This document shows, one piece after another, positions 6,782-43,876 of a stretch of 64,000 nt of DNA. The stretch's first letter is position 1; each line of letters begins with the position of its first letter. Below the pieces are notes generated by a model, which was not told the DNA's origin, searched no databases, and was given only the letters and a program-made list of their open reading frames with translations. The position numbers and the translations under genes were made by a program. Source of the stretch: Lepidodermella squamata (Eukaryota > Animalia > Gastrotricha); assembly GCA_047495785.1 (NCBI GenBank), contig JBLDXI010000003.1, forward strand, positions 3,100,001 to 3,164,000, in the 5' to 3' direction.

Positions 6782-6868
6782 CTGCGCTCAGTAAAATCAT
6801 TTTCATCAAGCGTCTTCTATTGTATTCTCAATTCATCAAGTGAATATATTTTCCGAAACTAAGTGAAC

Positions 6869-7539
6869 ATGCGTGCTATTTTGGTTGTGGCCGTTGTCGC
6901 CCTCTTCTGCATCAGTAATATCCTGAAATTCGCATCCTACTTTCAAAAATTGTTTTCACTCATTTAGTCGCCACCTCGGCGAACCTTGGCAAGCGTGGAC
7001 GTGGTGGCAACAATGTTTCCGCCTCGGTGAACAAGCGCTCTGCTTCCGCCTCGGCCGGTGACAACCGTCGTGGTGGTCGCTTCTTCGGCCGCAAGGGTCG
7101 TCGCGGCAACTTCGCCTCTGCCTCGGTCAACCGCCGCTCCGCCTCAGCTTCTGCCGGCAACAACCGCGGCCGTCGCGGCTTCTTCGGTCGCCGTCGCGGT
7201 GGCAACTACGCCTCGGCCTCCGTCAACAAGAACTCCGCCTCGGCGAGTGCTGGTGACAACCGTGGTCGCCGTGGCCACTTCATCGGCCGCCGTGGCTCCC
7301 GCTCGTCCCTGTCTGGTTCCTTCCGCGGCCGTCGCCACGGACGCGGTTTCTATGGCCGTCGCCATGGTGGTCGCTTCGGTCGCCGCGGTTTCGGATACGG
7401 CCGTCACGGTCGTCGTGGATTCTACGGCCGTGGTCGCCATGGCTACGGCTACGGTCGCTTCGGCCACCGTGGATTCTACAGCGGCTCGTCCTCGTCCGGC
7501 GACTTCTACGGCCGTCGCAATGGCTGGTTCTGGCATTAG
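6869..7539 (+). CDS. Secreted Arg/Gly/aromatic-rich cationic protein, type 1 copy a (205 aa)
   Basis: Exon 1 6869-6914 MRAILVVAVVALFCI, phase-1 intron 6915-6967, exon 2 6968-7539. Three ASASVNxxSASASAG repeats plus GRRGFYG-like repeats. Strong C/G third-position bias; near-identical paralogue at 43201-43876. Confidence 0.9.
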
Positions 7540-7678
7540 ACGTACTCTTGAAAGAACTTATTTGCTCAAGTTTCGATTTTACGTCGAAATGTTAAATCTA
7601 TTTATTCAGAGGGTTGCAAATAAGAGCGTAATCTATGAGCAATTTCTCTTTCAATTAGATATTCTTTAATCTAAAATA

Positions 7679-8754
7679 ATGCGAACTGTCCTGGTTTTGG
7701 CAATCATCGCTCTGGGCTGCATTGGTAAGTCTTCACAGTTATTCTCTTCGGCTAAATTCATAAACAATTTCTTTTAGCCCTCAGCTCAGCTGGCGGCTAC
7801 GGTGGCCGCAAAGGCAAGGGTGGCCGCCGTGCCTCTTTCTCCGCCTCGGTCGACCAACGCGACACCTACGACCGCAAGTCGGCCTCTGCTGAGCAAGAGA
7901 ACGGTGCCGTCGACTACGCCTCTGCCGATGCCTCTCACAACAAGCGAACCAGCGACAAGCGCAAGCTGATCAAGACCCGATCGGCCAGCGCAGAACGCGC
8001 CTCGGCAAACTACGAATCTGCTGGCAAGCGTGACTCCGCCTACGACCAGAAGAAGTCCAAGGCCGGCAGCAAGCGCCGTGGTCGCAAGATCCGTGAAAGC
8101 GCCGAGGCCGCCCAAGCCCAGCACGCCAACGCCTACGCCGACTCTGGCGCCGCCGCCGCTGCCCAGAAGCACCGCCGCAACAAGAAGCACGGCCGTGCTG
8201 ACCACAAGCGCAAGGCTGCTTTCCACAAGGACCAGGCCCGCGACAAGAAGGGCGAGGTTATCGAGTTCAAGAAGAAGACCTTCGCCGACAAGGGCCACAA
8301 CAAGGTCAACAAGTTCAGCTACGAATCCGGTGCCAAGAACTTCGGTGCCTACGACTCAGACGGTGCTGCCGCTACTACCAGCCGCAAAAAGACCGCCAAG
8401 AAGGCCCATGGCAAGAAGTCCCGCAAGGCCCACTCTGCTGCTTACGCTTCCCGCGACTCGAAGGCCTCGGCCGCTGCTGCCTCGAAGAAGGCGAAGCGCA
8501 ACAAGGCCCACCACCGCCGCGCCTCGGCCTCCGTCGCCCGTGACTCGCGCAACTCCCGCAAGTACAAGGCCAGCAGCAAGAAGACCTCCGTCTCCGACTC
8601 TGCCCACACCCGCAAGGCTGGAGCCAAGTATGGCCGCAAACGCGCCAATGCCTCGGCTGAGCGTGCTACCCACGACTTCCGTGCAGGTGTCTCTGCTAGC
8701 TATCGCGATGGTGGCTATGGCAAGAAGGGCGGCAAGCATGGCTACTACTATTAA
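7679..8754 (+). CDS. Secreted Lys/Arg/Ala/Ser/His-rich cationic protein, type 2 copy a (340 aa); not present in the ORF track
   Basis: Exon 1 7679-7724 MRTVLVLAIIALGCI, intron 7725-7777 (gtaagt..ttttag), exon 2 7778-8754 open: ALSSAGGYGGRKGKGGRRASFSASVDQRD...KKGEVIEFKKKTFADKGHNKVNKFSYESG...GGKHGYYY*. Paralogue at 41926-43062. Confidence 0.9.
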
Positions 8755-9407
8755 AAACTTTGATATGAGTTGATGCGTCAGATTTCGAGATTTTCTGCGC
8801 GTTGCAGTGATGACGTTACATTATTTATTTCAAGTAATCATCGAAATGCCAATTCCAAATAAAGAGCATCAAGTTTTCATCCATAATTGTTTGCTTTTTC
8901 ATATGCGCAGCAAACAGGTTTATATATCCACAGGCCATTGGGTATCGAGAGGTCATCTAAACATTTCGGTGTATACCATCAAATGTACTTCGAAACAGTT
9001 CGAAACTTGAACCAGAGACGCCACCCCAGCAGTTCCCTTTAACCTCGTAGAGCGGCCCGAGGAAACCACCGCAGATCGGTGTACTTTTTAAAACGACCTC
9101 TGGCAAAGCCAACCGAGTTAGAACAATGACATATATCCGCCAACAAATTCGCAAGTAAAGCCCATTAAAAATGTTTCGCAAATTATCACCCACAAGGATA
9201 CCCATGGGTCCTTTAGTAGAGTGCCGTTTCTGGTATTTATGAGCTGGAAATTGTGATTGGGAACATATAGCTAACATAAAGTGCTCCGTAAGGGCTGTTA
9301 AAGAGTGAGCGATGAATCATGAGTGAATAGCCTAGTTTTTTGTCAGTAGTAACTCAGTAACAAGGCGAAATTTCATTTTCCTATCCTGCTAGTCCTATAA
9401 TATCGCA

Positions 9408-10746
9408 ATGCTGGCATTCAGGCCTATATTCTACAGCATGAAACTTGTAGGTTTAGCCCCTAACTGGTCAATGCTGTCAAGTGGCTTCTCGGACAAAAAT
9501 GACTATACATCAAATCACGGAGCTTCATTTAAAATTTACCATGCCTACTGCTATCTGTTGGTTGTGCTAGGCTGGTGCAATGTTTTCAGGATATTGGCTT
9601 CCTTTTACTGGATCGTAGACGATGCAACACTTTCAAGCATTATGCACCTTTTCAGTATAAGCGCTCTCTATGTGGCAAGTGCTGCTACTAGAACCGCTCT
9701 GGTTCGCGGATCGCTGCGACTTAAACTGCAGCTTCACGCCTCAGAACACGGAGCTTCCGAAGACTATGGGATAACTCTACTATCCTCATTTCGAACAAAA
9801 CGAAGCGTCATGTTCCTAGTTTGCTTCATTGGAGCGTGGTCTATCTATCTAACAAACACAGCCCTGCTATGCACTGCATTGGTAGTGAAACGGGAACAAG
9901 TCTACGGCTGGGCTAATCCGATAGACAGAATTTTGCCGCTAAACGATACGATTTCCGATCAGTATTTAGTTTCTGGATTCGTAGCTATGGCTTTCGTGTC
10001 TGATATAGCTGTCTGTCACGGTTTGATGTTGTGCGGAGGCCTAACCATCAATTTAGCGTGGAAATTCCAACTTTTAGCCGATTGGATCTCAGAAAAGACG
10101 AAAACAGATATTCCAGCTTGGCAAGAAGACTCTATGCTAGATCAAGAAGATTCTCTGCTAGATTTTATAACTAAACAATGCCGTTTATTGAAGAGGGATG
10201 CTGATGATTTGGACAAAACACTAGGACCAGCTACCGTCACCCTTTGCTCCTTCGGCTTCGTAGCTACGTTAGTACACCTTCACCAGACGATTGAGGCTAA
10301 AGGGACGATGATGGTATATTTCGAGGCGACTTGGACTTTTTTCTCGTCTTGCTGCCTTTTGGCCGCTTTACTTCCGTCTGCCTATCTCGAACACTGCGCC
10401 GAGGAAGTTGCCAAGAATGTGAAACGTTTGAATTTCCAATCGACCGCAAATTCGACTATAATCAAGGTTAGCATGATCCGTTAATTGAATACAGCTAATT
10501 TATTTACTGGCTTTCAAGCTTACGTTACTGACGAATGAGCTAAGTGGCGAGCCTGTAGCGTTGAGTCTTTTTGAAATGGCTCATTTGCGCAGGAAGACTG
10601 TCATCGAGCTGTTCGCGGCTATGTTGACGTATTTTCTGATTCTGATCGACTATACGTCAAATGATAACAGCAGAAAAGCTGTTGCTGCAAGTAGCGAAGG
10701 CCAGAATTCTATATCAAATAACAACACATTCAATGCAACACAATGA
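9408..10746 (+). CDS. Gustatory receptor-like 7TM chemoreceptor (GR/GRL, 7tm_7 superfamily)
   Basis: 358-aa hydrophobic exon plus phase-0 intron (~10467-10518) and a final exon LTLLTNELSGEPVALSLFEMAHLRRKTVIELFAAMLTYFLILIDY, matching the GR C-terminal TYhhhhhQF region. Confidence 0.8.
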
Positions 10747-10748
10747 GA

Positions 10749-11682
10749 CATTGGCAGAGGCTTTCGTGGAAATCATTTTTTATTATTCTGAGCCGTTAGA
10801 AATAAATTATTGCAAAATCATTCATGCTTATTTAAAGCCCCAATCTTGGCTCAACTTATTTTCATTTGAAAGAGTTATTTGCTGGGAGCAGCTCCAGTTT
10901 CGACAGCGACCGAGTAGGAGAAGTTGTTGGAAGCAGAGTAGCTGCCGCTCTTGCTGCCCTTGCGACCCTTGCCGTGCTTGCCGCCCTTCTTGCCACCAAA
11001 CTTCTTGCCACCGAACTTCTTGCCACCGTGGCGCTTGTTGCCACCCTTCTTGTTGTAGCCGCCGAAGGAGCCCGATCGCGAGTACGAGCCGGACATGGAT
11101 CCGCGCTTGTGCACGCGCATGAACTTCTTGGTGGAGACCTTGCGGGTGTGCTTGTTCGTGCGGGCCGACACCGACGCGGACACGGACTTGGAGAACGAGG
11201 CACGGCGGTGCTTGCGTCCAGCGACGAAGGCCTTCTTAGCCGGGCGCTTCTTCATCACGTGTTTCTTCGGCTGCCGGTTGTAGGACACGCTGATGGAGAC
11301 GCTCTTTGAAACGCTCTTGCCCTTGTTACCTCGGCCAGCGTCGACCTCGGAAAAAGCTGAAATTGAATGGGCCAGTTAAATGGTACGTCAAGTCGGGAGT
11401 ATCAGTCTAAATTCACCAAGTCCAAGCAGGACGACAGCAGCAATAACAAACGCAACGCGCATTTTATTGAAGATTTCGAATTTCGATTTGAAAAATGAAA
11501 AAACGCTGAATCGATAACTTGATAATTCGACTCATCTCATCATCCGTTTTATACCCTAAATTGAATGCGATGGCGTAATTCATTAGCATGATTATGTCAT
11601 GATTTGAGAGACCCCTAATTTGAAAAATGACGCACAAGTAACTATAGAGAAGATTCAATTATTCGAAAGCTCGAGATGCAAT
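10749..11682. repeat. Direct segmental duplication unit (copy 1) carrying cationic gene type 3; copy 2 at 14470-16134
   Basis: 3' flank, CDS, intron and promoter align closely with 14470-16134 once the insertion in copy 2 is removed. Confidence 0.9.
10875..11462 (-). CDS. Secreted Lys/Ser/Gly-rich cationic protein, type 3 copy a (175 aa)
   Basis: Exon 1 11462-11417 MRVAFVIAAVVLLGL, phase-1 intron 11416-11357, exon 2 11356-10875 AFSEVDAGRGNKGKSVSKSVSISVSY...GGKKFGGKKFGG...ETGAAPSK*. TATAAAA at 11553-11547. Confidence 0.88.
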
Positions 11683-12474
11683 CACCCAACAGTGTGCGAA
11701 GTACGGCGAAGTATCGTCCACCGAGAGAGGTCACTGACCGAGAGAGCACTGACCGAGAGCGCTTGCAATGGTTAGCTCTCCATGCTGGTTCGAAACATTT
11801 CAACTCACATTCCAAGCTAGCTGAACAATTTTCGGCTGGTGAAATAATTGAATATCTGAAACATGAGGTTGAATAACTTTTGAGCTACGCTTCCATTCTG
11901 TTTTATACCGGAAATCCTGATATTATTGTCCCAACTCCAGGAAGCGAGGCTTTTTCAAGATCGTTCAGCTGGAATTGTTCGAAATCATGGAGATTTCCAA
12001 GCAGTTCGATTTGGACGGATCCTCAAGTTGAAGCTTCGGTCTTTGCAAGAAATTAACACACTTTAACTTACGCTGTTTTGCTGGCACGTGAACGATCAGC
12101 TAAAACGTTTATAGGCGATTGGTATAGAATAACTGATTTTCTAACCTCTATAATGATAGCTTTCATGAATTTAGGTTCATGACTGTAGTGTTAATCCATT
12201 TTGCGAATTTTTGGTTTTAATTTATTCATTTGAGAAAACCATACACCATACACCATACGGTTTCTTTTTTTACTATTAATAAAGAGTTTTTGAGAAATCG
12301 CTTGCCAGTTAAGTATTCATCCGCTTTTGATTTCTGAAAGAACTTAAAAGCGTTTATAAAGCTGCGTCATAACAATATCGCAGCCAATTATCGCATGATC
12401 CGGACTGACAACTCGCGCTGAGAGGCATCGATTTCAAATTATTCATATTTTCAATTATTGACTGTTCTAATAGG

Positions 12475-13475
12475 ATGAGACTACTCATTTTATTCGGCGC
12501 CATCTTTTTAGGTTTCTTTTACATAACGTGTGTTCATCCTTGAATAAGTGTTGACATTTTCACAGGCATTGCCTATTCCGAAGCGGGATCTCCAACAGGC
12601 AGACGACAGCATAAATTCAAAAAATGGCGCCGTGTTGCCCTCGGCGAGGATTTGAATGCCAACTCGAATGTGAACAAAGTTACGGCTGATGAATTTTTCT
12701 ACTATGCCGTTGATGAAAGTGGCGAGGCCGCGCCTTGGCAGCTACCGTGGTGGATCTATTACTATCACCATCCGAAAACCACTACTACGACAACAACTAC
12801 AACCACCCCCACAACAACAACACCAACGACAACAGTAGCTTTGGTGAGAAGAAGAAAAAATTAACCAGACTTCAAAGATGTTTCAGATTAGAGTTAAAAG
12901 ATCAGGGTCCTGGAATTATTTGATAACTTTTTGGAATGGTTTAGGAGGTCTTGTCAATTATTTGATTATTTTCTGACCAGGCTGCTTATCGATGTCTTGG
13001 ACCAAGCGGACCGAATGGCCAAGTGATAACTTGCCGAAGTGGAGCTTGCCTGGCCACCGAAACGACATATCCAGCGACACCTTTCAGTAGCGTTTCGGCA
13101 TGTCAAAACGCTGTCAAAACAATCAAATTTTTCCCGGAGGATTATGCGAATCGCCGAGTGGCGATCTCAGTTTGTGCGAATAACGGCGGCCAGTTAGCTC
13201 TACTGAAGACTCAGGCTGATCTCGACATAGCTTCCCAGCTGATCGGTACGCGAGAAGCCCACATTGGCCTGACGAACGGGGCTGTTGATGGAAGCGTGTG
13301 GACGTGGGGAGACGGCTCGCTGTATGCCGGCTTACCTCCCTTTCGTTCCGGTAGACCGTACAACACGCCGAATTACTGCGGTTTGCTCGCCAATATAGCT
13401 GGCGAGGGCGCCGTTATCGATGACAATCCCTGCAGCAACACCTATAATGGAGTTTTATGTGAAGTCTATGCTTGA
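12475..13475 (+). CDS. Secreted C-type lectin with a Thr-rich stalk and a 4-Cys module
   Basis: Exons 12475-12511 (MRLLILFGAIFL), 12566-12843 (poly-Thr), 12981-13475 (C..GGQLA..HIGL..WTWGDGS..C..IDDNPC..LCE, C-type lectin fold) join in frame. Confidence 0.85.
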
Positions 13476-13930
13476 TGGTTTGAAACAATGCGAATTCAAT
13501 TATTATCCATGTGGTTTTCTGAGCAATAAATTAAACAATAAATATTATGCATAAGTCATAAACGCTGTCAAGTCGGTGTTAACCTGACTGCGGCGAGGCA
13601 ATCCGTCGCTTTTTGGCCGACTTCGGCTTGCAGAAATACCTAATTTCGGCTACTGTGACTAAACTTCGGCACTTCTGGGTTGCCTATCCAACACATTGCA
13701 TAATGCTCCCTGGGCCATTTGAGTATATAAAATTCGGCCGTCTCTAAGTCTATAGCGATGACCCAGAGCTCAATTCGATAGCCCGAGAACTACGCTATAA
13801 TTCTGTATTTGCCAAATTTTCTAAACTTTCACCTGGCTGGCAAAGTAGGAAAACCCAAAAAAGTGACCGAATTTAGGGCGGGATGATCTACGAATCATGG
13901 TCATAATTATAAGATAGGTATAAGGTGTTA

Positions 13931-14594: not shown

Positions 14595-15907
14595 TTATTT
14601 GCTGGGAGCAGCTCCAGTTTCGACAGCGACCGAGTAGGAGAAGTTGTTGGAAGCAGAGTAGCTGCCGCTCTTGCTGCCCTTGCGACCCTTGCCGTGCTTG
14701 CCGCCCTTCTTGCCACCAAACTTCTTGCCACCGAACTTCTTGCCACCGTGGCGCTTGTTGCCATGCTTCTTGTTGTAGCCGCCGAAGGAGCCCGATCGCG
14801 AGTACGAGCCGGACATGGATCCGCGCTTGTGCACGCGCATGAACTTCTTGGTGGAGACCTTGCGGGTGTGCTTGTTCGTGCGGGCCGACACCGACGCGGA
14901 CACGGACTTGGAGAACGAGGCACGGCGGTGCTTGCGCCCAGCGACGAAGGCCTTCTTAGCCGGGCGCTTCTTCATCGCGTGCTTCTTCGGCTGCTTGTAG
15001 GACACGCTGATGGAGACGCTCTTTGAAACGCTCTTGCCCTTGTTACCTCGGCCAGCATCGACCTCGGAAAAAGCTGAAAATGAATATTAGGCCAGTTAAA
15101 TGGTATGTCATATCAGGAGTATCAATCTAAACCAACCCAGTCCAAGCAGGACAACAGCACACTAGAAAAAATTAACCCCTGATCAGGGGTCAGCTGTTTA
15201 AACCATTTTGCTGATCAGGACGAAAAAGGGACAACCCCTGATAATCAACTGTCGCCAGCTGATAATCCATGTCATTTCAGGCTGATCAGCATGACTTTGC
15301 TGATCAGGGGTCAAAAGTGTGCATTCGCTAATTAGCCAAGCGTGCATATGCAAATTAGGCTGCATGTTCAATTCAGGCTTGCGTCGGAAGGTCCATATTT
15401 TCAAAAAATAGTATTGTTTCACACGCGAACTCTATTACTTCATCTGTTAACTTAGCTGTAGTCCTTCTCTCTGTAACAAGTGGCTCTACCAAGTGCCAGC
15501 ATGAGACCCTGCCATATGTTTAGGTAGTTGCCGCGTCCGGTGGCATACCATACCACCGATGGCACGGATGGCACCAGGGTGGGCGGATCTTGATCAACCG
15601 GCTATTCAAAAAAATAATATAAAAATAATAAATGAGAAGGGCTGCCATTTTCCTAAAAAATTTTACTGAATTTGCTGATCAGCAGCTGATCAGGGGCGCT
15701 ACAGGTGATTATTATCAGCAAATATTGGAAGCAAAATGACCCCTGATCAGGGTGAGCTGATTAGGGTTCATTTCAATATAACCCCTGATCAGGGTGCATA
15801 TTACCCCCTGATCAGCTATAGTAATGACTAGGAGCTATGACCCCTGATCAGCCCCCTGATCAGGGGTTATTTTTTTCAAGTGCAGCAATAGCAAACGCAA
15901 CGCGCAT
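14595..15907 (-). pseudogene. Cationic protein type 3 copy b; signal-peptide exon interrupted by a transposon
   Basis: Exon 2 intact and nearly identical to copy a; exon 1 (ATG 15907) is split by the element at 15160-15882. Confidence 0.8.
15160..15882. mobile_element. Non-autonomous CACTA/EnSpm(CMC)-like element, 723 bp
   Basis: TIRs CACTAGAAAAAATTAACCCCTGATCAGGGG / CACTTGAAAAAAATAACCCCTGATCAGGGG; 2-bp TSD CA shown by comparison with the empty site in copy a; subterminal palindromic CCCCTGATCAGGGG repeats. Confidence 0.85.
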
Positions 15908-16467: not shown

Positions 16468-19400
16468 TCAAACACGGCCACACATAAAATTGAGGAAATT
16501 GTCATCGTTGAATAGCGGCGATCCTGATAGGAAATCGTCCATTGTAGCATAGTGGCGGAAGAAACTTGGCTTCGACGCGACATTCCGCCTTAACGCTGTT
16601 ATCTGGCTCTCGTCGTAAGCTATCGACTCGCCGAATCCAATAGCGAAGATCTTGGTGTTATCAAGATGTCTCAACTCATTTAGGTCACCCTCAGCTAGGC
16701 TGTAGGACGAAACTCGAGGGGCTGTTGTAACAAAAATGAATCTAACCGCTGATTGAGATGCTAGCTCTGGCATCAAAGTAACTCGCGCTGTTTTGAACAG
16801 TTTCGCTAAATCATCGGGTAGTTTGTTTTTGAGCGGCACTACAGTCGTATTCAACCAGTTGGGACTGAAAGGCGCTATCGCCCAGACCTCCTGCCGTTCA
16901 AAAGCGGCAGCATAATCCGAAGCTACTGGTTTGTTCTTCAGAGCAAGAACTGCTACGTCAAGACTTGAATTTCCAGACACCACCTCCCATTTCGAAGCGG
17001 CTGATTGGATGAAACTAGCAAATTTAGCCGCCGAATTCTCGGCGAACTGTGGCGTTTCAAGTAGATCAACGATGAAAACAAGGCTGATAATCTTCGGGCA
17101 GTGGGATAGATCGGGCTTGCAAGTTGGTACTGCAGACCAAACTCCTTGTGGCGTGCAGGACGTACCAGGGTAGCCTGTCATGATAAAACCAGCCTCGCAT
17201 TCCCACCAGATCGTATCACCGACTAAGCTTCTAGTTTTGTTAGTCGGCAGTGATGTGAAGTCGATGAATCCGTTTTCGACGATTGGCGGGATGCCGCAGG
17301 TGATCCCGTCAGACGGGCGGCTAGCACAACGCGGTATTGGGGTAGACCATTTCCCGGTTTCGAGACATTCAATTCTAGCAGGACCCTGGAGGAAATACGG
17401 CTCTTGGCACGTGATAGTTACAAAACTGCCATAAGTGCTTTGGTCTCCAACAAAATTACGATCCGTCTCTTTTGAATTAAGTACCGTAGGGACTGGTCCA
17501 CAAGTTTGATCTAAAGAGAAAAATTCAGTAAAACAACAAGCAAATAATTCCACTTTAAAACTTGCCATATGCGATCCTTGTGCATATAGGAGGTATAGAC
17601 CAATCGCCTCCTTGGAGACAGGTTATGTCTTTCGAGCCAATCAGAGAGTAACCAGGTGAGCAAGTGTAGGAAACTTGAGTTCCCGGTACCCGAACCTTCG
17701 GGAAGCTACCAGATATCACACCATTAGCAATTGCGGGAGGATTTCCACAATTTCCAGCTGTCATGGAATAAATTTAGTCAAATGCAAAATGGCCATTAAT
17801 TGCTTACTTCTGATCTTGATAACGCAATAGGGTAGAGCTGACCATTGGCCATCAGGCTTGCATATCACTGCAGAGCTTCCCACGATTTCGAAAAGATCCG
17901 CCAAGCATTCGTACCAAGCAACATCCCCTACAGCACTGATGTCACCCTTCATCGTCGATAATACCATGCGGGTGTTGATGATGAATGGAATAGGCCCGCA
18001 GCCACCAGTGCGTTGAATGCATTGGGGTGGCGTAGACCAAGTTCCAGCCACCGTACAGACGACCTGATCATGTTTGCTATCCATTAAATAGCCATCAACG
18101 CATTTGATACGGATGTAATCGCCAGGGATCGGCGATGCAGAGCCGTAAGACTTCATGACAACAACGGAATTGTTGATTTTAGGAAACTCGGCACAAGCAA
18201 ATTTATCTGAAAAGCAAGTCTCGGTACAACAATAATAGAAGAAAGGATAGATAGACTTTACTTGGTACACATCGAGGCGGAGAAGTCCAAAGACCATTGA
18301 GGCACATGACAGTTGAGTTACCAGTCATGGCGTAGCCGGGTAGGCAGGAAAATAGAGCGAAATTTCCGTCAACCGGCGTAGCATTGTCGGCAAAGTTCTT
18401 AAAGAGAATCATCGCATGGACAACATGCGGAGTACCCTCACAAGTAGCCTCTGTAAGATATTTATATCGAGAGAATTGACAAGCACCATCCTCTTTCAAA
18501 TTAACTTACGCTTCCTTGAGCATGTCGGAATGCTAATCCATTTTCCGTCAAGGCCACATTGAGCTGCAGGGCTTGCACTTTCCATTTCGTACCCATGAAG
18601 GCATTCAAAGATCACCTAGTTTGGAGAAGTTTCTTTCTAATCCCAAGTTCAAAGCTCACACTTACCTTGTCTCCAGGAGATGCAGAGGATCCTGCAAATG
18701 TTCTGTCCTTGATCCTTGCGTTCTCGATCGCAGGTAGGAATTTACAAAGCTTGACTGGCACACATTCGGGAGCTGCAGTCCATTTTCCATCCGCTCCACA
18801 TTGAATGTAGTTCTGGCTCTTGGCATTACCTGATCCAAGCTCGAAGCCAGCCCTGCACTCAAAAATCGCTACCGAGCCAACGGGAGGTTTCGATGCCTTT
18901 TCAGACGGGAAACTTGAGAAAACAATCTCAGCATTTTCAACTTCAACAACGGGCCCACAGCTTGGGACATCAAAATTTGAGGTTGCTTCAATACAACGCG
19001 GTCCTTCAGTCCAAGTTCCACCTTTCCAGCACTGGGAGTAAGGTTTCGACCCAGTTGACAGGACATACTTATCCATGCATCGATAAACGACGATACTGCC
19101 TAAAACACTAGATGCTTCGTGGAAATTTTGAGAGACTATCACGGCATTGTCAACAACAGGAGCTTCGCCGCATTTCGTAACGGCTGAAAAATTGAAAATT
19201 ACATCGTTACATTTCTAGCACACCCGAGAATCTTACTTTCGTCTTTAATGCATGAAGGGACTGGAGACCATTTCCCGTCGATGCAGGTTACATCCCGGTT
19301 ACCATCAAGAGTGTAACCATGGTAACATGCGTACTTCACCCGGTTCCCTCCGTAAGTTGTATAGTTGCCAACAAGCCTCTCCGAGACGAAACCGTTCACA

Positions 19401-30867: not shown

Positions 30868-31930
30868 AAACTTCGAAGATCTCTGAATGTCTCGAAATAT
30901 TGTCAAATGTGTTCGCGCTGGGCATGCAGGGAGGATCAAGTTTCAATGGTTGACGCACGGTACAGACGGCTGTCGATTAATTATCAGCAAGGTATCTCTG
31001 CAAGCGCGGTTTGTATGATTCAGTTGTGCCCATTTTTCCTCTTTCAAATTACTCTTACTTACCATAGATGTAAAAAAATTGATCAGGGCATTGCTAAGTG
31101 CACGCATTCAACAATGCAAGATCAAGACAGATGAAATTACCCGATTCCACATACGAGAACACTCCATGTAAATAGAGGTTGTCGAACGGCGTTCAACGAA
31201 AATTAGCTCGAGGACACAACGCAGCCCCCTGTAGGATGGCGGTGCCCCCTAGTTCGTCTCGAAGGACCAGGGGCTGGCGAGAGGAAGCGATGATTTCGCT
31301 TTTAGAGGCATCAAACTGCTGGCGCCAAAAGCAGCTATTAACGGCAGCTGCTTGCCGATATAATTGCCGAGGTTGTAGTTTCCTAATTTGATTGAGCCTA
31401 ATCCTTCCGTGAATTATATCGATTCAAGTGTCAGAAATGCGATTTGTTGACTCGAGTTTGCTAAACATTTTGGTGGTTATGGAACAAAGAAACAATTTTC
31501 GAATGCGCGACAGATTTACCGCTTTACCCCTTCCTCTCATTACAAAAGGACAGAATCTCCAGAACGTTCTGATTCACAACTGACTGATCTGACTGATTCA
31601 TAAGTTCTATATCTCGAGTTAGACAGTTATAGAAAGCGTCACTCAGAAGCTTATTTAGCAAGATGCGTCTTCGTCGTCATTAGCAAACCGTAGCTGCAAA
31701 TTATGTTGTTGCGATCTTATACTCTATGCGCAATGTGTGAATGAGCAGGAAATTAATGAGCTGAAACTAAGAGCGGAAAACTTGGTCCGTGAGACGTGCG
31801 ATTCAGTACTTCAGTAATCGACACGCAATCCACGCGATTTAACCCCCGCGCGAATCTGCACAGGAACGTTTCGCGATTTTTCCAACATTTCACGATATCT
31901 AAAAGGTATAACTTTGCAGCTTTGCAGCCG

Positions 31931-34279
31931 ATGAAGCGCGTAATAGGTTCAATTTTTCTGCTTTCAATCCTGGTACCGATAGCAAGATGTAACAATTCCC
32001 AGCCGTACAGGCTAAAGATTTTGTCATTGCTACCCTTCACTGGTTCGGAGCCAATAACCTTTCGAACGTGCCAGGCGACTCAAAAAATGGTCATCGACAT
32101 TGTGAACAACAGGACTGATATTCTACCCCGCTATCACTTGGAAGTTGAGTGGTTGGACGAGGGCTCGTTTTCCTCTCTGGCCGTGCAGCGAGGTATAGAT
32201 TTTCTGAGAAACTATTTCACCCCTTCTGAACCGATGCTCATCACGTCACCGTTATCTATTGGACCGCTCTACACTCCAGGCTGCATCAGCTGGGGAAGGA
32301 TTGCGGCTTACGCTGGGATGGTGACTATAGGGCTGAGTTGCACAGCCTCGTCTCTAACGGCGAATCGCAAGGTTTTTCCGAACTTTTATCGAACCCGAGG
32401 TCCGGTAGACCTGGCGATCCTTGCACGAGTCCGTTTCATCAAAAGTGTCACACCTTGGCGTAGAATCGCGCTTCTAGTCCACCTCGATAGTAGTGGATCA
32501 GGCTTTGAGTTGGCTAATAGATTCTACGAACTAGCATCTAATGAAGGCTTAGATATCGGAGCTTTTGAGAGCATATCTGAATCTTCTGGTCTACAAGTTA
32601 TGCGAAATCTGAAATCAGTGGATTTTCGAATTTTCACCTTTGACTCTGGGGATTTCAACTCGTTACCTAGATTTCTTTGTCAGGCCTATAACGCAGGTAT
32701 CACAGGACCGAAATATGCATTTGTAGTACCAACTATAATCTTCAACGAACCGACCTCCCTACCAGATGATAGCTTTTCGAAAGAATGTACAAGAGCTATT
32801 TATTACGAGCAAATGAAAATAACTTTTATCATCGGCGCGCCGTATCGAGCTCTTGTAACTATTCCAGAGTTACGCACTGCCTTGGGCCATACCACCGCTG
32901 ACTTTGAAAGACTGTATTCCGCGATTGCCGACGTGAAAGCAGCTGATTTTCAATTCCGTCATCTCTGCTATGACATCGCCCTGCAAAGCGTTTTAATTCT
33001 CGATAAAGCCGAGAAACTTCTTTCAGCCCGAAACTTGAGTCTAAGAGATTACCATACTGCAAGCAGGGAAATAGTTCTGCAAACTGTAAATACAAGCGCT
33101 GGTACCATCAGGTACCAAAATCTCAGACATGGAACATTTCAGTATTCTAATCGTCTTGAAATTGACACCGAAGCTCAATATGCCGCGATGTGGGACCAAA
33201 ATCATGGTTTACACGCCATGTATAGACTGCAACTACCTGCAAACTCGACGGACGTCACAAATATGAATTTCTTCGTGGTCCAAGAGATTTCACCAGTTCT
33301 TAGGTTCCCGCGAGATTCTTCGCTAGAGATCACCTATGATGGGGGTGTAAAAATGCCGGGTTTTATCACTTTCACCGTTGTAGCCTTCTTGGCAATAACC
33401 ATCCAATTGTGGCTCATAAGCTCGAAGCGGATCACACTCAAATTGGGTAGGGAAAGTGGGGTGGATACAACTTTTATAGCAAGCTATATTCTCATGTTGG
33501 CAGCTGCAATTATAAAGTCTTTGCCGTCGTCTTTGAGGACTGATGCGTCTTGCCAGGCTAGCACCTTTCTCATCATAACTGGCTTGGCAGGGTACTCGAG
33601 TGCTTTATGCATGCGCCAATATGCTGCTGTTCGATTCTTGAAGGCCATTCGAATAAGTACACCAGTGCCAAATTCAGGCTTTCACATAAGGGATCAACCA
33701 ACGCCCAACTCAGGTATTCTTCCTAAATTTCAATTGAAAGAAGGCCACTTGATCAAATACCCGATATTGCTAGCGTTAATTGGAGTTTTGTTCTGCATTT
33801 GTTGGCTTTTCACCGACCCATTACGAGCTGAGTTGAGTGAAAGAGAGAATAGCCAGGAGTACGTCGAAGATATCGATACTGTTATATACCATAAGTCCAT
33901 TGTTTGCGTCTCGGATGATTCTTGGAAATGGAGTGGAGGGATGATCGGCATCGTCTGTATTCCTCTCCTAGGTGGAGCGGCACTTTCGGTTTCATTAAAA
34001 ACGTCACAATGCTTCAAATTCTATCCCCAAGTGAAGGCTTTGTTTCGTGTGTATATTTTCACTTCTACCTTATTCCTCGCTTCAATTACGCTGACCTTCA
34101 TTTCGTTGTCCAGTTTGATGCTTGATTTGACTTTTTCTATTAGCTTATTGGTATTATCCTTTGGCAGTTGCGTTCAGATTTTCTATCAAAAATTGTCTAG
34201 CATAAAAGCTTCGTGTAAGTATGTGCGCGTATTTTTCTCAACGAGATTCTTCTCTGATTCACGAACAAGTAACCACTAG
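31931..34279 (+). CDS. Intronless class C GPCR (GABA-B-like), paralogue 2
   Basis: Likely start MKRVIGSIFLL; collinear with the 28447-30867 and 35578-37938 proteins. Confidence 0.88.
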   Translation: MKRVIGSIFLLSILVPIARCNNSQPYRLKILSLLPFTGSEPITFRTCQATQKMVIDIVNNRTDILPRYHLEVEWLDEGSFSSLAVQRGIDFLRNYFTPSEPMLITSPLSIGPLYTPGCISWGRIAAYAGMVTIGLSCTASSLTANRKVFPNFYRTRGPVDLAILARVRFIKSVTPWRRIALLVHLDSSGSGFELANRFYELASNEGLDIGAFESISESSGLQVMRNLKSVDFRIFTFDSGDFNSLPRFLCQAYNAGITGPKYAFVVPTIIFNEPTSLPDDSFSKECTRAIYYEQMKITFIIGAPYRALVTIPELRTALGHTTADFERLYSAIADVKAADFQFRHLCYDIALQSVLILDKAEKLLSARNLSLRDYHTASREIVLQTVNTSAGTIRYQNLRHGTFQYSNRLEIDTEAQYAAMWDQNHGLHAMYRLQLPANSTDVTNMNFFVVQEISPVLRFPRDSSLEITYDGGVKMPGFITFTVVAFLAITIQLWLISSKRITLKLGRESGVDTTFIASYILMLAAAIIKSLPSSLRTDASCQASTFLIITGLAGYSSALCMRQYAAVRFLKAIRISTPVPNSGFHIRDQPTPNSGILPKFQLKEGHLIKYPILLALIGVLFCICWLFTDPLRAELSERENSQEYVEDIDTVIYHKSIVCVSDDSWKWSGGMIGIVCIPLLGGAALSVSLKTSQCFKFYPQVKALFRVYIFTSTLFLASITLTFISLSSLMLDLTFSISLLVLSFGSCVQIFYQKLSSIKASCKYVRVFFSTRFFSDSRTSNH

Positions 34280-35577
34280 CATCCGTGAGACCTGCAGGTA
34301 GAATGTATAATAAAATTAGAATTAATTAGAGAGAGAACCGAATTACCAAATTACCGAATACCGTAACCAGGGTGCGATCTTCGATCCCCGAGCTCCCGGG
34401 GATGGAAAAAAATTTTTTGCTGTTTTTGCCAAAATGACGAGTCATTTCCGCTAATAACCGAGCGAAGCGAGAAAATTTTGGAGATTTTTCCACTGTAACG
34501 CGCCCCAGAACCTTTCAAAATTAACAAAACAGTGGGATAAATTCTCATTTTGTTGTCTGGCCCGGCCGAGCTGGGGGGATGATCCCCCCTCCCCCCCCCC
34601 CCCCCCTGAAAGTCGCACACTGACCGTAACGCTTGGTGATTGTGGACAGGGTAACTTTGGACACTGTTTCTTTATATTTGAATAGCTTCGAAACGGCAAA
34701 AGACAAAATTACGGGATTTATTGCATAAAATGTTCCGCCTTACGAGCTTTCAAATGCTGTAAGGCCGATGATTATTGGGTTAATAATTGATTTTAGAGAA
34801 ATGTTATAATCAGTATCTGCTATGTCGATTTGGCACCCCCTCGTATCTTCCTAAACAAGATCAGCTTGGGTCAAAATTTGGCATGGGCGTTTCAATACCA
34901 TTAATCACTTGAATGAAATAAACACATTCGAAAATAAAATGAAAATCGGACGATTAGCTTCTGCAAGGCGTTCAGGTGCCATAAATATGGTAATTTTGCA
35001 CTGAAAAAAGAGGCGGCGTCGCAACAAAAAATTTTCTTGGAATAACGGATGGTGCGCCATATGTTCCTGATTTTTTTCTAATTCGGACCGAAAAGTCAAC
35101 AGAAATATAGAAGCACATAATGCTATTGCATATGCAAATGAGCGTCAAACATTACCATCTAATTGTCTGCCAAAGGACGGTACCTATTTCAAAATTATTT
35201 TAGATGAGCTCGAATTTTAACACACTATTGAACGCTGGGTAATTTCATGTCTTATTCCTTGGGTTGTCAGTCGCTCAAATCATCGGACAACTTTTTCCAG
35301 CATCAAGCGTCTCCATGAGAAAATGTCATGCTGCAGGTAATCAGCATTGTACATTCATCTACGCCACCTTGAGCAATATCATGTGGTCGGAATGGGCAAT
35401 AAATTAACGAATCAGACTAACCACGCCTGCAGTAATATATTTGTCTGATAATTAACCGTAGATTTGTATTCCGTGCTTAAGCCGTTTTGAAACTTAATCC
35501 TCCCCGCGCGAATCAGCGCGGATAATTATCGTGATTTTCGCAACATTTCGAGACATTAAGACAACTCAAGAGTTCGA

Positions 35578-37938
35578 ATGAAGTGCAAAGTCCTTTCCGC
35601 TATTCTTCTTCCCTTCTTGGTGGTACCAGCAAGATGTGACAGGCCACCACTACAGAGGCTGAAGATTTTATCGTTGTTACCCTTCACTGGTTCAGAGCCA
35701 ATAACTTTTCGAACTTGTCAGGCGACGCAGAAAATGGTCATGGACAATGTGAACAACAGAACTGATATCCTACCTGACTACCATTTGGAATTCGAATGGC
35801 AAAACGAAGGCCCGTTTTCTTCCCTGTCCGTGCAGAAAGGAATCGACTTTTTGACGAAGTATTACGCTCCAACAGAACCAGGCCTATATGCTTCGCCTTT
35901 GTCTCTCGGACCGCTCTACACCCCGGGTTGCATCAACTGGGGGAGGGTTGCGGCCTATGCTCAGATGGTGACCATAGGGCTGAGTTGCACAGCCCCGTCT
36001 CAAACAGCGAACCGTGAGATGTTCCCGAATTTGTACCGAACCAGAGGTCCGGTTGACCTCGCAATCACTGCCAGAGTCCGTTTCATTAAAAGCGCCACAC
36101 CATGGCGTAGGATTGCTAGTTTGGTCCACTTGGACAGCAGCGGATTTGGCTTTGAGTTGGCGATCAGATTCTACGAACAAGCAACTGATGAGGGCATTGA
36201 CATCGGAGCTTTTGAAAGCATCACCGGATCTAGTCGACAAATCTTGGAAACTTTGAAATCAGACGATTATCGAATTTTCACGTTTGACTCCGGGGATTTC
36301 AACACGCTACCTAGTTTCTTGTGCCAGGCTTATCATGTCGGCCTCTCAGGTCCTAAATACGCGTTCCTCTTACCGACAACACTTTTCAACGAACCAACTT
36401 CTCGCCCTGATGAGAGTTTTCCAGAAGGATGTACCACAGCTATTTATTACGAGCAAATGAGGATATCGTATTTCATCGGAGCGCCCTATCGAGCGCTTGC
36501 GCCTAACCAGAAAATCCGCACTGCTTTAGGGCATACCATTACTGATTTCGAGAGACTGTATACCGCTCTTGCTGATCCTAAAGCAAACGACTTTCAATTC
36601 CGGCATCTGTGCTATGACATTGCGTTACAGAGTGTATTGATCCTAGACAAAGCCGAGAAACTTCTATCGCAACAGAATTTGAGCCTGAGAGATTACCAAA
36701 CTGGTAACCGTGATGCTGTCATGCAAGCTGTGAACAAAAGTGCGAGTACGTTAGTATATAACAACCTTCGACACGGCACTTTCCAATATTCAAAACGGCT
36801 AGAGCTCGATAGTGAGGCGCAGTTTGTAGCGATGTGGGATCGAACTCGAAGTTTACACGCCAAGTACAGAATAAAATTAGAGGGCAATAAGACTGATGTG
36901 ACGAACATAAGTTCTTTCATAGTAGAAGACATTTCTCCCCTCCCGGGATTTCCTCGCGATTCAGCGGTTGAGATAGCCTACGACGGGGGCGTTCAACTAC
37001 CTGGTTTCATCGCACTATCTCTCGTCGTCCTGCTGGTATTGGCCATTCAATTATGGTTCATAGGCTGGAAGCGAATTGCACGAAATATTAGCAAGAATTC
37101 TTCGGCGGATTCTATTTTTCTTTCAAGCTACATTCTGAACTTGACAGCTGTACTTTTGAAATCGACGCCATCTACTTTTCGGACGGATGCAACTTGTCAC
37201 GCTAGCGTTTTCTTCATCATAACCGGCTTAACGTCTTACACGAGTGCTTTATGTATGCGACAATATGCTGCTTTTCGGTTCTTGAAAACTACTCAAATTA
37301 AGAATCAAGCTGGTACACAGGGGTCCGTTTCAGTGGTTCACCGCACCGGTACCATGAAGGATCAACATCCGCCCAACTCTGTTACAATCCCTAAATTCAG
37401 ACGGAAAGAAGGACATTTGATCAAATACCCGATATTTATAACGTTAATTGGCGTTTTAATCTGGATTTGTTGGTTTTTCACCGATCCTTTACGAGCAGAG
37501 TCTAGTGAACGGGAGGCAAACCATTACTACGTCGAAGAAACTGACGCTGTCATCTGTCAGAGATCGATTGTATGTGGCTCGGATGATTTTTGGAAATGGA
37601 TTGGAGGATTGATCAGCCTGAACTGCATTCCACTCCTAGGCGGTTCAGCGCTTGCTGTCTTATTGAAAAACTCACAACGGTTCAAAATGTATCCAGAAGT
37701 GAAATTTCTGCTTCTGGCGCATCTTTTCACCGCTACTTTATTCCTCGCTTCAATTGCTCTAATATTCATCTCGACGTCAAGTTTAATGCTTGATTTGACC
37801 ATCTCTATCAGTATGTTGTTACTGTGCTTCGTTAGCAGTGTCCTAATTTTCTATGAACAATTTTCCAGCACCACAGGCTCGTGCAAATCCGCGCTGGCAT
37901 TTTTCTCTTCTTTTCTATATGGTTCAAGGCAGCATTAG
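35578..37938 (+). CDS. Intronless class C GPCR (GABA-B-like), paralogue 3
   Basis: 786-aa ORF with signal peptide, Venus-flytrap domain and 7TM region. Confidence 0.9.
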   Translation: MKCKVLSAILLPFLVVPARCDRPPLQRLKILSLLPFTGSEPITFRTCQATQKMVMDNVNNRTDILPDYHLEFEWQNEGPFSSLSVQKGIDFLTKYYAPTEPGLYASPLSLGPLYTPGCINWGRVAAYAQMVTIGLSCTAPSQTANREMFPNLYRTRGPVDLAITARVRFIKSATPWRRIASLVHLDSSGFGFELAIRFYEQATDEGIDIGAFESITGSSRQILETLKSDDYRIFTFDSGDFNTLPSFLCQAYHVGLSGPKYAFLLPTTLFNEPTSRPDESFPEGCTTAIYYEQMRISYFIGAPYRALAPNQKIRTALGHTITDFERLYTALADPKANDFQFRHLCYDIALQSVLILDKAEKLLSQQNLSLRDYQTGNRDAVMQAVNKSASTLVYNNLRHGTFQYSKRLELDSEAQFVAMWDRTRSLHAKYRIKLEGNKTDVTNISSFIVEDISPLPGFPRDSAVEIAYDGGVQLPGFIALSLVVLLVLAIQLWFIGWKRIARNISKNSSADSIFLSSYILNLTAVLLKSTPSTFRTDATCHASVFFIITGLTSYTSALCMRQYAAFRFLKTTQIKNQAGTQGSVSVVHRTGTMKDQHPPNSVTIPKFRRKEGHLIKYPIFITLIGVLIWICWFFTDPLRAESSEREANHYYVEETDAVICQRSIVCGSDDFWKWIGGLISLNCIPLLGGSALAVLLKNSQRFKMYPEVKFLLLAHLFTATLFLASIALIFISTSSLMLDLTISISMLLLCFVSSVLIFYEQFSSTTGSCKSALAFFSSFLYGSRQH

Positions 37939-38321
37939 CCAATACCTAATTACTAGCATTTGTCTTGTTTCACTTTCAACCTTCACATAATAATAAATAA
38001 TTTGTTCTTCGATATTTTAATGAGGTACTTCAGTTTACCACGCGTGTCTGATATGTCTCGCCGCATGAGAAACCTTTCCGAGATTTAGCGTTAACGGTAA
38101 TTAGCTACACTGATGCCGAAGGAGTTGGATTTCTTTAGAACATCTGTCTGTCTAACCACGAGATTTTCAGAAAAACTATGTCAGCAGTAACGCGGTATCT
38201 AGCGCCATTCTTTTTCTCACCTCGACATCTACTGGGGCTAATTATTTGCTTGAATAATCGCATCGCCAACGCATTGCTTTTGATAGGAACAAAAATAAGT
38301 TTTTTATTCCAATCAGAAATC

Positions 38322-41300: not shown

Positions 41301-41565
41301 AATTATGACGACATCAGCTTTTCGGATACCCTGGTTTTGAAAGGTTTAAATTTGAAGTTTCAAGATAGGTTATTCTGACCTCTTCCATTCGCTCATTTTT
41401 GTCGCCATACATCTCAGCAGTGTCTATCCAGACGATGTATTTCCGCGTTGAGCTGAGTTTGCTCGCGATAGCTCGAACTTCTTCTTTGGTGTCATTCCAG
41501 CGATAGCTGATGAAAATATTAGCCACGGCTTTTGACTTGCTAACGTCTGCTATATCTTGTGGCAT
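38322..41565 (-). CDS. TIR - NB-ARC - ankyrin repeat protein (NLR/STAND-like)
   Basis: Exon 1 41565-41380 (IFISYRW..VWID), intron 41379-41331, exon 2 GIRKADVVIIFFSDDYQKSRDCRKEAE..; Walker A GGGGTGKTTL, Walker B LLVLDDV, VVTRD, GLPI, LVHQ; about 10 ankyrin repeats. Confidence 0.92.
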
Positions 41566-41925
41566 TATTGTAGAACGTGCAAATGATGCGCACTGTTTTT
41601 ATATGTGCAAATGCTCGCATTATCCTTCAGTATGCATAAAATCAATGGTAAATTAATAATTGAATGCAACTACCTATTCGCTGCATCCCGTATGTGAATA
41701 CAGGTGAGTGCTCCATGATGGCATATGGTATGAATAAGGAATCGGACCGTAAAAACTCACTCAGCTCCGCCTTGTTCATGAATACATCGTGAAATGTTGT
41801 CAAAAAGTTACTTTTAATCGAGAATTGATAAGTAATTTTATTCCGAAAATATATCGATATTATTGACACGCGGCTTTTCACAAATAATTTGATATCACTG
41901 GGAAGAAAGAGTCAAATCAAAGTTT

Positions 41926-43062
41926 TTAGTAGTAGTAACCGCCGTGGCGACCACCATAGCGACCATCGCGATAGCTGCCTGAGACAGATCCGTGGAAGTC
42001 ATGGGTACGGCGTTCAGCCGAGGCGGAGGCGCGTTTGCGGCCGTACTTGGCTCCAGCCTTGCGGGCGTGGGCAGAGTCGGAGACGGAGGTCTTCTTGCTG
42101 CTGGCCTTGTAGTCGCGGGCGTTGCGCGAGTCACGGGCGACGGAGACTGAGGCGCGGCGGTGGTGGGCCTTGTTGCGCTTCGCCTTCTTCGAGGCAGCGG
42201 CGGCCGAGGCCTTCGAGTCGCGGGAGGCGTAGGCAGCAGAGTGGGCCTTGCGGGACTTCTTGCCGTGGGCCTTCTTGGCGGTCTTTTTGCGGGTAGCAGT
42301 GGTGGCAGCGCCGTCAGAGTCGTAGGCACCGAAGTTCTTGGCACCAGATTCGTAGCTGAACTTGTTGACCTTGTTGTGGCCCTTGTCGGTGAAGGTCTTC
42401 TTCTTGAACTCGATCTCTTCACCCTTCTTGTCGCGGGCCTGGTCCTTGGTGAAACCAGCCTTGCGCTTGTGGTCGGCACGGCCGTGCTTCTGGTTGCGGC
42501 TGTGTTTCTGAGCAGCGGCGGCGGCGCCAGAGTCGGCGTAGGCGTTGTCGTGCTGGGCGAAGGCAGCCGAGCCGCTGTGACGCTGCTTGCGGTTACGACG
42601 CTTGCTACCGGCCTTGGACTTCTTCTGGTCGTAGGCGGAGTCACGCTTGCCAGCCGAGGCGTAGCTGGCCGAGGCGCGTTCGTGGCTGGCCGATCGTTCC
42701 TTGATCAGCTTGCGCTTGTCGCTTGTTCGTGCGTTGTGGGAAGCATCAGCCGAGGCGTAGTCGACGGCAGCGTTTTCTTGCTCAGCAGAGGCGGACTTGC
42801 GGTCGTAGGTGTCGCGTTGGTCGACCGAAGCGGAGTAGGAAGTACGGCGACCTCCCTTGCCATGGCCCTTGCCATAACCACCCTTGTGACCATCATATCC
42901 CTTGCCGTAGCCGCCCTTGTGTCCGTCCTTTTTACCGTAGTCGAACGTTGCTGAGCTCAAGGCTGAAAAGAAACAACATGGATATCAATGCTCATTCAAA
43001 ACTGGGTAAATCCTACCGATGCAGCCCAAAGCGATGATTGCCAAAACCAGGACAGTTCGCAT
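41926..43062 (-). CDS. Secreted cationic protein type 2 copy b (360 aa)
   Basis: Exon 1 43062-43017 MRTVLVLAIIALGCI, intron 43016-42963, exon 2 to 41926; carries extra N-terminal DGHKGGYGKG repeats. Confidence 0.9.
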
Positions 43063-43200
43063 TATTCTAGATTAAAGAATATCTAATTGAAAGAGAAATT
43101 GCTCATAGATTACGCTCTTATTTGCAACCTCTGAATAAATAGATTTAACATTTCGACGTAAAATCGAAACTTGAGCAAATAAGTTCTTTCAAGAGTACGT

Positions 43201-43876
43201 CTAATGCCAGAACCAGCCATTGCGACGGCCGTAGAAGTCGCCGGACGAGGACGAGCCGCTGTAGAATCCACGGTGGCCAAAGCGACCGTAGCCGTAGCCA
43301 TGGCGACCACGGCCGTAGAATCCACGACGACCGTGACGGCCGTATCCGAAACCGCGGCGACCGAAGCGACCACCATGGCGACGGCCATAGAAACCGCGTC
43401 CATGGCGACGGCCGCGGAAGGAACCAGACAGGGACGAGCGGGAGCCACGGCGGCCGATGAAGTGGCCACGGCGACCACGGTTGTCACCAGCACTCGCCGA
43501 GGCGGAGTTCTTGTTGACGGAGGCCGAGGCGTAGTTGCCACCGCGACGGCGACCGAAGAAGCCGCGACGGCCACGGTTGTTGCCGGCAGCAGCCGAGGCG
43601 GAGCGGCGGTTGACCGAGGCAGAGGCGAAGTTGCCGCGACGACCCTTGCGGCCGAAGAAGCGACCACCACGACGGTTGTCACCGGCCGAGGCGGAGGCCG
43701 ATCGCTTGTTCACCGAGGCGGAAACATTGTTGCCACCACGTCCTCGCTTGCCAAGGTTCGCCGAGGTCGCGACTGCACAAGAACAAATGTGAAACGTGCG
43801 CAATAATTGACGAAAAAGTGGATCAATTACCAATGCAGAATAGGGCGATAATAGCCGCGAGGAAAATGAAACGCAT
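43201..43876 (-). CDS. Secreted cationic protein type 1 copy b (205 aa)
   Basis: Exon 1 43876-43831 MRFIFLAAIIALFCI, intron 43830-43773, exon 2 43772-43201 nearly identical to copy a. Confidence 0.9.

Follow-up and report, generated by a model that had tools for sequence, protein, structure and literature searches.

Sandcastle-worm cement (Pc-1/Pc-2 type) and mussel foot proteins contain basic blocks rich in Gly, Tyr, Lys and His, whose positive charge is suited to complex coacervation. In Macrostomum lignano, the temporary-adhesion system Mlig-ap1/ap2, which is very large and multi-domain, reportedly includes a Lys/Arg-rich secreted protein proposed to bind negatively charged surfaces. In caddisfly H-fibroin, phosphorylated (pSX)n motifs, where X is aliphatic or Arg and n is 4–5 (for example VSISRSVSI), form Ca2+-bridged beta domains (PMC4929942), and in the repeat units of this silk, [(SX)nE]m is described as preceding a Gly-rich spacer (PMC13267644). 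Barnacle cp19k and Gly-Ser-rich cement proteins (GSrCPs) alternate S-X and Gly/Ala/Ser/Thr blocks with Arg/Lys-rich blocks (PMC5099703). Here we analyse six genes for small, predicted secreted, basic proteins of three types (A1 and A2, B1 and B2, C1 and C2) in a 64-kb stretch of Lepidodermella squamata DNA (contig JBLDXI010000003.1, positions 3,100,001 to 3,164,000), hereafter the window. The best explanation of our results is that types A, B and C represent three orphan (lineage-restricted) families of secreted, largely disordered, polycationic low-complexity proteins.

We give roughly even chances to the reading that these families are bulk building blocks of an extracellular material in a small freshwater invertebrate. 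We favour it because of the secretion signals, the abundance of A and B transcripts, the codon optimisation and the purifying selection along whole chains, and because the chains lack Cys, contain 22–29% Lys+Arg and have basic Gly/aromatic blocks in regular alternation with tracts of Ser-X or Ser/Ala. The two most plausible materials, which rank equally, are a secreted adhesive and an egg envelope; type C may be part of another material than types A and B, or be made at another life stage.

Composition and motifs of the mature chains

Mature chains of all three types are devoid of Cys and strongly basic, with isoelectric points (pI) of 10.3–12.0 and net charges of +40 to +54. They are also very hydrophilic (grand average of hydropathy, GRAVY, from -1.1 to -1.4), with 9–24% Gly, and protein sizes are 16–36 kDa. 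Type A (189 aa, pI 12.0, +42) contains 24% Gly, 22% Arg and 14% Ser, and type C (159 aa, pI 11.7, +40) contains 19% Lys, 18% Ser and 15% Gly. Type B is longer (324–344 aa, pI 10.3–10.6, +49 to +54), with 17–20% Ala, 14–15% Lys and 13% Ser; mature B1 has 20% Ala, 15% Lys, 13% Ser and 10% Arg (pI 10.6, +54) and ends in YYY.

Each type has its own internal layout. A1 consists of three repeats of ~33 aa (SASV..SASASAG..RRG-FF-GRR) followed by a Gly/Arg/His/Tyr/Phe tail. C1 carries four (Ser-X)5-6 tracts of 9–11 residues (SVSKSVSISVS, SFSKSVSASVS, SMSGSYSRSGS and SKSGSYSAS) between Lys/Arg/His blocks, plus a KKFGG repeat, and B2 displays N-terminal repeats GGYGKG / DGHKGG. Alternating serines, counted as SxSxS windows, occur 15 times in C1 (0.55 in shuffled sequences, the count being reached in 0 of 5000) and four times in A1 (0.32 in shuffles, reached in 3 of 5000). 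In B1, alternating-Ser tracts are not clearly above chance (485 of 5000 shuffles reach the observed count), and it is the S-x-E motif that is enriched (five occurrences for 1.27 expected, reached in 12 of 3000 shuffles).

Codon usage also sets these genes apart. The G+C content at third codon positions (GC3) is 0.69 in type A, 0.76–0.77 in type B and 0.82 in type C, as compared to 0.44–0.55 in ten neighbouring open reading frames (ORFs). AAG accounts for 94% of Lys codons in the family versus 36% in the neighbours, and CGT+CGC for 95% of Arg codons versus 22%. None of the neighbouring ORFs measured shows this bias, which is the signature expected for very highly expressed genes. An original prediction made from the DNA letters had described Cys-free, highly cationic chains, C/G-rich third codon positions and Ser/Ala alternating motifs between basic blocks; the first two descriptions agree with our measurements, and the third holds for C and A, which exceed shuffled sequences, and not clearly for B.

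Comparison with silks, cements and cationic peptides

One parallel in design is with caddisfly H-fibroin. The (Ser-X)n tracts of C1 have n of 4–6, with X mostly Val, Ile, Ala, Lys or Arg, and lie between basic Gly-rich blocks; such motifs are found in C1 and A1, and are not significant in B, where S-A-E endings nevertheless resemble the [(SX)nE] units of caddisfly silk. However, no homology to H-fibroin was found with Pfam, word-indexed, HMMER or PDB searches, and while H-fibroin exceeds 300 kDa and has conserved termini, the A, B and C proteins (159–344 aa) are far smaller, far more cationic and non-arthropod. Likewise, A and C resemble barnacle cp19k and GSrCPs in alternating low-complexity blocks with Lys/Arg-rich blocks, and the proteins of the window are similarly small, secreted, built on internal triple repeats (in A1) and without relatives outside their own lineage. 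They differ from these barnacle proteins in the absence of any significant match, in a much higher charge density, in the scarcity of Thr and in the prominence of His/Tyr/Phe-Gly blocks. The block design predicted to parallel invertebrate glues is thus real for C and A, the parallels being with underwater silks and cements.

Two other comparisons may be drawn. The N-terminal repeats of B2 and the extreme positive charge of the proteins resemble those of sandcastle-worm cement and mussel foot proteins, although there is no homology and no gene for a separate polyphosphoserine partner was seen in the window. The resemblance to Mlig-ap1/ap2 lies in a Lys/Arg-rich secreted protein from a micro-invertebrate, but A, B and C are small and domain-free.

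Type A invites a further comparison. A1 contains seven [aromatic or aliphatic]-Gly-[K/R][K/R] sites between positions 6970 and 7536, where 0.37 would be expected (0 of 3000 shuffles reach this count), and 12 G-[KR][KR] sites, where 2.5 would be expected. Aromatic or aliphatic residues followed by Gly and a dibasic pair are a classic amidation-plus-cleavage signature, and in C. elegans clustered Gly/Tyr/Arg-rich genes encode epidermal antimicrobial peptides. Type A in particular, with its signal peptide, its clustered and duplicated genes and its high expression, could then be a polyprotein precursor of small cationic peptides (antimicrobial or amidated signalling peptides) released by dibasic cleavage after Gly. 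The Gly/Arg/Tyr/Phe/His-rich C-terminal half of A is indeed reminiscent of nematode NLP/CNC and arthropod Gly/His/Arg-rich antimicrobial peptides, which share with it clustered, duplicated genes and signal peptides; those peptides, however, are under about 100 aa, whereas A is longer and includes Ser/Ala tracts. Moreover, the number of sites in A1 may merely reflect its RRG-FF-GRR repeat, the furin-type motif R-x-[KR]-R is not enriched there, types B and C do not show the Gly-dibasic pattern, and the chains, at 160–340 aa, lack the acidic spacers usual in peptide precursors. Finally, the whole A chain is near-perfectly conserved, Ser/Ala tracts included, which suggests that the entire chain is functional. 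We hold a peptide precursor to be improbable and prefer the building-block reading for type A.

The composition of type B would fit yet another role, namely that of an extracellular hydrophilin, LEA-like protectant or space-filler shielding membranes or matrix in drying, freezing or dormancy rather than bearing load. B has a GRAVY of -1.4, is rich in Ala, Lys, Ser and Asp, lacks Cys and is very highly expressed; the long low-confidence helices in its AlphaFold model give the usual disordered picture of LEA-type proteins, and it falls within the operational definition of hydrophilins (high hydrophilicity and >6% Gly), which is a compositional one only. Nevertheless, B has no LEA match in Pfam, even at an E value of 1, LEA proteins do not typically have such a net charge or Tyr-rich ends, and B transcripts are abundant in an ordinary RNA sample. 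A protectant function thus strikes us as quite improbable, and a structural role in an extracellular material remains our preferred reading of type B.

Searches for relatives

Low-complexity sequence is hard for all search methods, so that an absence of relatives means here that none is detectable. Pfam (E value up to 1) returned nothing for A or B, and a single sub-threshold match to GRP for C (11.7 bits for a cut-off of 30). A word-indexed search of 5.8 billion proteins revealed no relatives of A1, B1 or C1, an exhaustive HMMER search of 1.84 billion representatives revealed none of B1, and searches of PDB sequences were empty for A, B and C alike. For B1, none of 394 pattern matches among JGI metagenome contigs was confirmed. 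In the ESM Atlas, C1 had no match, and the one lead for B1, arthropod DUF4779 (score 0.85), was weak and below threshold. In the full-text literature, no paper was found with six peptide strings taken from the A, B and C proteins, and no description of such proteins was found in the literature on rotifer adhesive, egg-shell or hydrophilic proteins. The original statement that no named family could be recognised is therefore borne out by these searches.

Transcription and splicing

Four public sequencing runs were aligned to positions 6600–11700 of the window. One of them, X1, is RNA-like, as its depth is zero in the intergenic bins 6600–6770, 8823–9335 and 11388–11700, and it contains the exact GT..AG joints of A1 and B1 (Table 1); none is listed in this run for C1. 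Summed depths in X1, which pool all contigs at at least 90% likeness and thus describe families rather than single genes, reach about 1e4–2e4 for type A and 6e4–1.7e5 for type B, while they amount to 3–7 on the unrelated ORF at 9408–10484. It is hard to see what other than expression could produce a difference of three to four orders of magnitude. A and B are thus transcribed and spliced, at very high levels.

X1 contains 54% of the B2 words, and 4–19% of them, or contigs 90–95% identical in DNA, occur in runs labelled as other organisms (B, C and E–H) and in freshwater metatranscriptomes. The small shares of B2 words in these metatranscriptomes are the one pointer to a freshwater habitat. In run X2, a contig extends upstream of position 6967 into the A signal exon, of which it includes the final 15 letters, implying that an A-type relative is spliced there too. 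The same run provides a loose end with a B-type C-terminus (..KHYY-stop), which indicates that B has kept its aromatic end there as well. Over exons, the DNA run X5 is 20–250 times as deep as over the flanks; with the same caveat on summed depths, this suggests many similar copies in the genome, and perhaps a large gene set.

TATA-like boxes were seen, by eye only, upstream of the genes. The A1 stop and the B1 start are separated by 139 bp (7540–7678), in which no AATAAA was seen by eye. RNA depth stays above zero in the bins across this interval, these bins being coarse. A two-gene transcript (operon) is possible, as is a tightly packed untranslated region and promoter.

Duplication, probable gene conversion and selection

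Self-comparison of the window shows that A-B is present in two inverted copies separated by about 34 kb, and that C1 and C2 are a tandem pair with 96% DNA identity. The two A proteins differ at one of 189 residues, and exon 2 of B1 and B2 shares 88.5% DNA identity. Divergence is very unevenly distributed along the A-B pair: A exon 2, the 139-bp spacer and B exon 1 lie in a near-identical tract (98.2%), around which identity falls to 33 of 46 nt in A exon 1 and to the value given above in B exon 2, and no alignment is possible for the A introns and promoters. Both edges of the tract are sharp and lie near exon-intron borders. Such a sharp tract amid far more diverged flanks suggests that the A-B unit probably underwent recent gene conversion. 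A and B form one tightly linked, jointly homogenised unit.

Substitutions between copies are mostly silent in type A, with nine synonymous changes and one non-synonymous change (ratio of non-synonymous to synonymous rates, dN/dS, of 0.04). The ratio is 0.29 for B1/B2 and 0.39 for C1/C2, the latter calculated on eight differences only. Judging from these ratios, purifying selection is acting on the paralogue pairs.

Across types, the mature chains of A, B and C are mutually unrelated, the best BLASTP E values ranging from 0.46 to 2.5, in keeping with the three dissimilar types originally described. Signal exons are more alike: those of A and B are identical at 30 of 46 nt and have AIIAL-CI in common, which makes them about as similar as the signal exons of the two A copies, whereas the C signal exon is less similar to those of A and B (22–27 of 46 nt). 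A dissimilar gene of the secreted type, located between C1 and C2 (12475–12864, + strand), shows how far this design extends. Its signal exon is 37 nt long and its phase-1 intron 54 nt, and its product of about 111 aa has a basic N-terminal part and is unlike types A–C (GC3 0.44). A signal exon followed by a short phase-1 intron is thus general here rather than specific to the family; it is the exact length of 46 nt that A, B and C have in common.

A possible secreted material: proposed mechanism and weighing of the evidence

If the proteins are building blocks of a material, the following steps may be envisaged. The signal peptide, encoded mostly by the 46-nt exon 1, would be cleaved and the chain would enter the secretory pathway. 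After release, the Lys/Arg blocks would condense with an anionic partner, which might be the chains' own phosphoserines on (Ser-X)n / S-x-E tracts, an acidic polysaccharide or a negatively charged surface. Cohesion would then come from Ser-X / Ser-Ala tracts and Gly-Tyr/Phe/His blocks, serving as 'stickers' that pair as beta-strands, make cation-pi contacts or become cross-linked by Tyr oxidation.

Several observations weigh against this reading. Both serine phosphorylation and tyrosine oxidation of the A, B and C chains are putative. AlphaFold predicts no confident beta structure, no beta-hairpin ribbon for type B and no defined fold for B1 or C1: for B1 the mean confidence (pLDDT) is 54 and the helices, at residues 28–144 and 212–265, are long but of low confidence, and C1, with a pLDDT of 57, is essentially coil without secondary structure. 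Such low values are typical for intrinsically disordered chains. Summed depth is a poor measure of expression, and in X1 it is only 30–90 on C1, i.e. 100–1000 times below A and B. A k-mer search among the four independent promoters recovered only three AT-rich 6-mers common to all of them, which is not significant.

Some of these points also argue that there is not one system at all, and that A, B and C are three independent orphan genes, alike only in composition and in a common signal-exon design, with different functions and expression programmes. The unrelated mature chains, the low abundance of C, the lack of a promoter motif common to the types and the occurrence of the same kind of signal exon and short phase-1 intron in the dissimilar gene at 12475–12864 are all in line with such independence, as is the location of A and B, 2.1–2.8 kb from C1 with an unrelated ORF between them. 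Conversely, exon 1 is exactly 46 nt long in all three types, the signal exons of A and B are as alike as those of two A copies, and extreme codon bias, Cys-free polycationic chains and Ser-alternating tracts are common to all three. We regard full independence as rather unlikely, and continue to prefer a role of the three types as material components.

The original prediction went further, in proposing a highly expressed, co-regulated family of common origin. Splicing is established for A1 and B1, and high expression holds for A and B in X1 but not for C, despite codon optimisation in all types. As C depth is low in the one RNA-like run and no significant promoter motif is shared, and as the case for common origin comes down to the equal length of exon 1 and the likeness of the A and B signal exons, we do not endorse co-regulation or common origin.

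A more specific version of the material reading can be put forward more tentatively. These genes may belong to a large toolkit of orphan polycationic proteins that evolved de novo, in many clusters on one chromosome region, and that set as a glue or egg coat by self-coacervation of phosphorylated (Ser-X)n / S-x-E tracts with their own Lys/Arg blocks. Caddisflies and sandcastle worms arrived independently at a phosphoserine-polycation chemistry, of which this would be a variant with a single component. We consider this version doubtful, though worth stating. If the glue or egg coat proves true, the present genes would provide the first molecular parts list of such a material in a little-studied group of micro-invertebrates, and another independent invention of the (Ser-X)n-plus-polycation design of underwater silks and cements. 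Because the chains are short, Cys-free and simple, they would suit recombinant production for work on biomimetic adhesives or coatings. More generally, they illustrate that some of an animal's most abundant transcripts may have no detectable relative in billions of known proteins.

Gene structures and the disrupted C2 copy

Models of all six genes were rebuilt from the DNA sequence of the window (Table 1). In the five intact genes (A1, B1, C1, B2 and A2), exon 1 encodes Met-Arg followed by 13 hydrophobic residues, and is followed by a GT..AG phase-1 intron and a single exon that is open to the stop codon. Candidate signal-peptidase sites, read by eye, lie a few codons inside exon 2 (ATSA|N, LSSA|G and LAFS|E), with small residues at -3/-1. 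Scans of the whole window for the exon-intron design and for GC3-rich basic ORFs recovered no further family member. The six genes of one architecture that had been announced thus amount to five intact ones and C2, whose signal exon is split by a transposon.

Table 1. Coordinates of the six genes, of the transposon inserted in C2 and of the near-identical A-B tract, as positions in the window.
Feature	Position	Strand	Remarks
A1 gene	6869-7539	+	
A1 exon 1	6869..6914	+	46 nt; signal peptide start MRAILVVAVVALFCI; joint 6914>6968 in run X1
A1 intron	6915..6967	+	53 nt; GT..AG, phase 1
A1 exon 2	6968..7539	+	RNA-covered
Near-identical A-B tract	6966..7727 vs 43774-43014	inverted	98.2% identity; A exon 2 + 139-bp spacer + B exon 1
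B1 gene	7679-8754	+	
B1 exon 1	7679..7724	+	46 nt; MRTVLVLAIIALGCI
B1 intron	7725..7777	+	53 nt; GT..AG, phase 1; joint 7724>7778 in run X1
B1 exon 2	7778..8754	+	RNA-covered
C1 gene	10875-11462	-	
C1 exon 2	10875..11356	-	
C1 intron	11357..11416	-	60 nt; GT..AG, phase 1; model only, no joint listed
C1 exon 1	11417..11462	-	46 nt; MRVAFVIAAVVLLGL
C2 gene	14595-15907	-	not intact
C2 exon 2	14595..15073	-	open frame
C2 intron	15074..15136	-	63 nt
C2 exon 1, 3' fragment	15137..15159	-	23 nt
Non-autonomous DNA transposon	15160..15882	.	723 bp; within C2 exon 1
C2 exon 1, 5' fragment	15883..15907	-	25 nt from ATG
B2 gene	41926-43062	-	
B2 exon 2	41926..42962	-	extra N-terminal Gly/Tyr/Lys/His/Asp block vs B1
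B2 intron	42963..43016	-	54 nt
B2 exon 1	43017..43062	-	46 nt
A2 gene	43201-43876	-	
A2 exon 2	43201..43772	-	
A2 intron	43773..43830	-	58 nt
A2 exon 1	43831..43876	-	46 nt; MRFIFLAAIIALFCI

The insertion interrupts C2 exon 1 after 25 nt and leaves the intron and exon 2 otherwise intact. The inserted element is bounded by 30-nt inverted repeats starting with CACTAG (93% complementary) and contains about ten subterminal palindromes (CCCCTGATCAGGGG); by its appearance, it looks like a CACTA/CMC-type element. Its target duplication is ambiguous (CA, GCA or CAGCA, i.e. 2, 3 or 5 bp), because it inserted into a CAGCAGCA repeat. No second copy was detected elsewhere in the window.

Other features of the window

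The window contains several further genes and repeats. Sushi-repeat arrays are located at 1–1596 and 16468–26543; near the first of them, an ORF segment (3083–3496, - strand) includes a Thr/Ser/Pro-rich, mucin-like run (PTTPSTTTSTTTK) and has a GC3 of 0.62. Five paralogues of class C G protein-coupled receptors (ANF_receptor + 7tm_3) are found at 28447–37938 and 44348–46816, each as a single, apparently intronless ORF of about 800 codons; some of them are inverted, with 74–82% DNA identity, and a 42-nt exon and a 45-nt intron may precede two of them. An NB-ARC/ankyrin gene, as well as kringle and C-type lectin genes, are also present.

Mobile elements left further traces. At 48407–50162 (- strand), the remnant of a MULE transposase domain extends over overlapping ORFs in a GC-richer stretch, probably representing a decayed Mutator-like element. 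Dispersed repeats that are 78–82% identical occur in both orientations (3822–4132 / 63523–63842; 4813–5062 / 54491–54743; 13773–13890 / 54722–54841) and are probably fragments of unclassified mobile elements.

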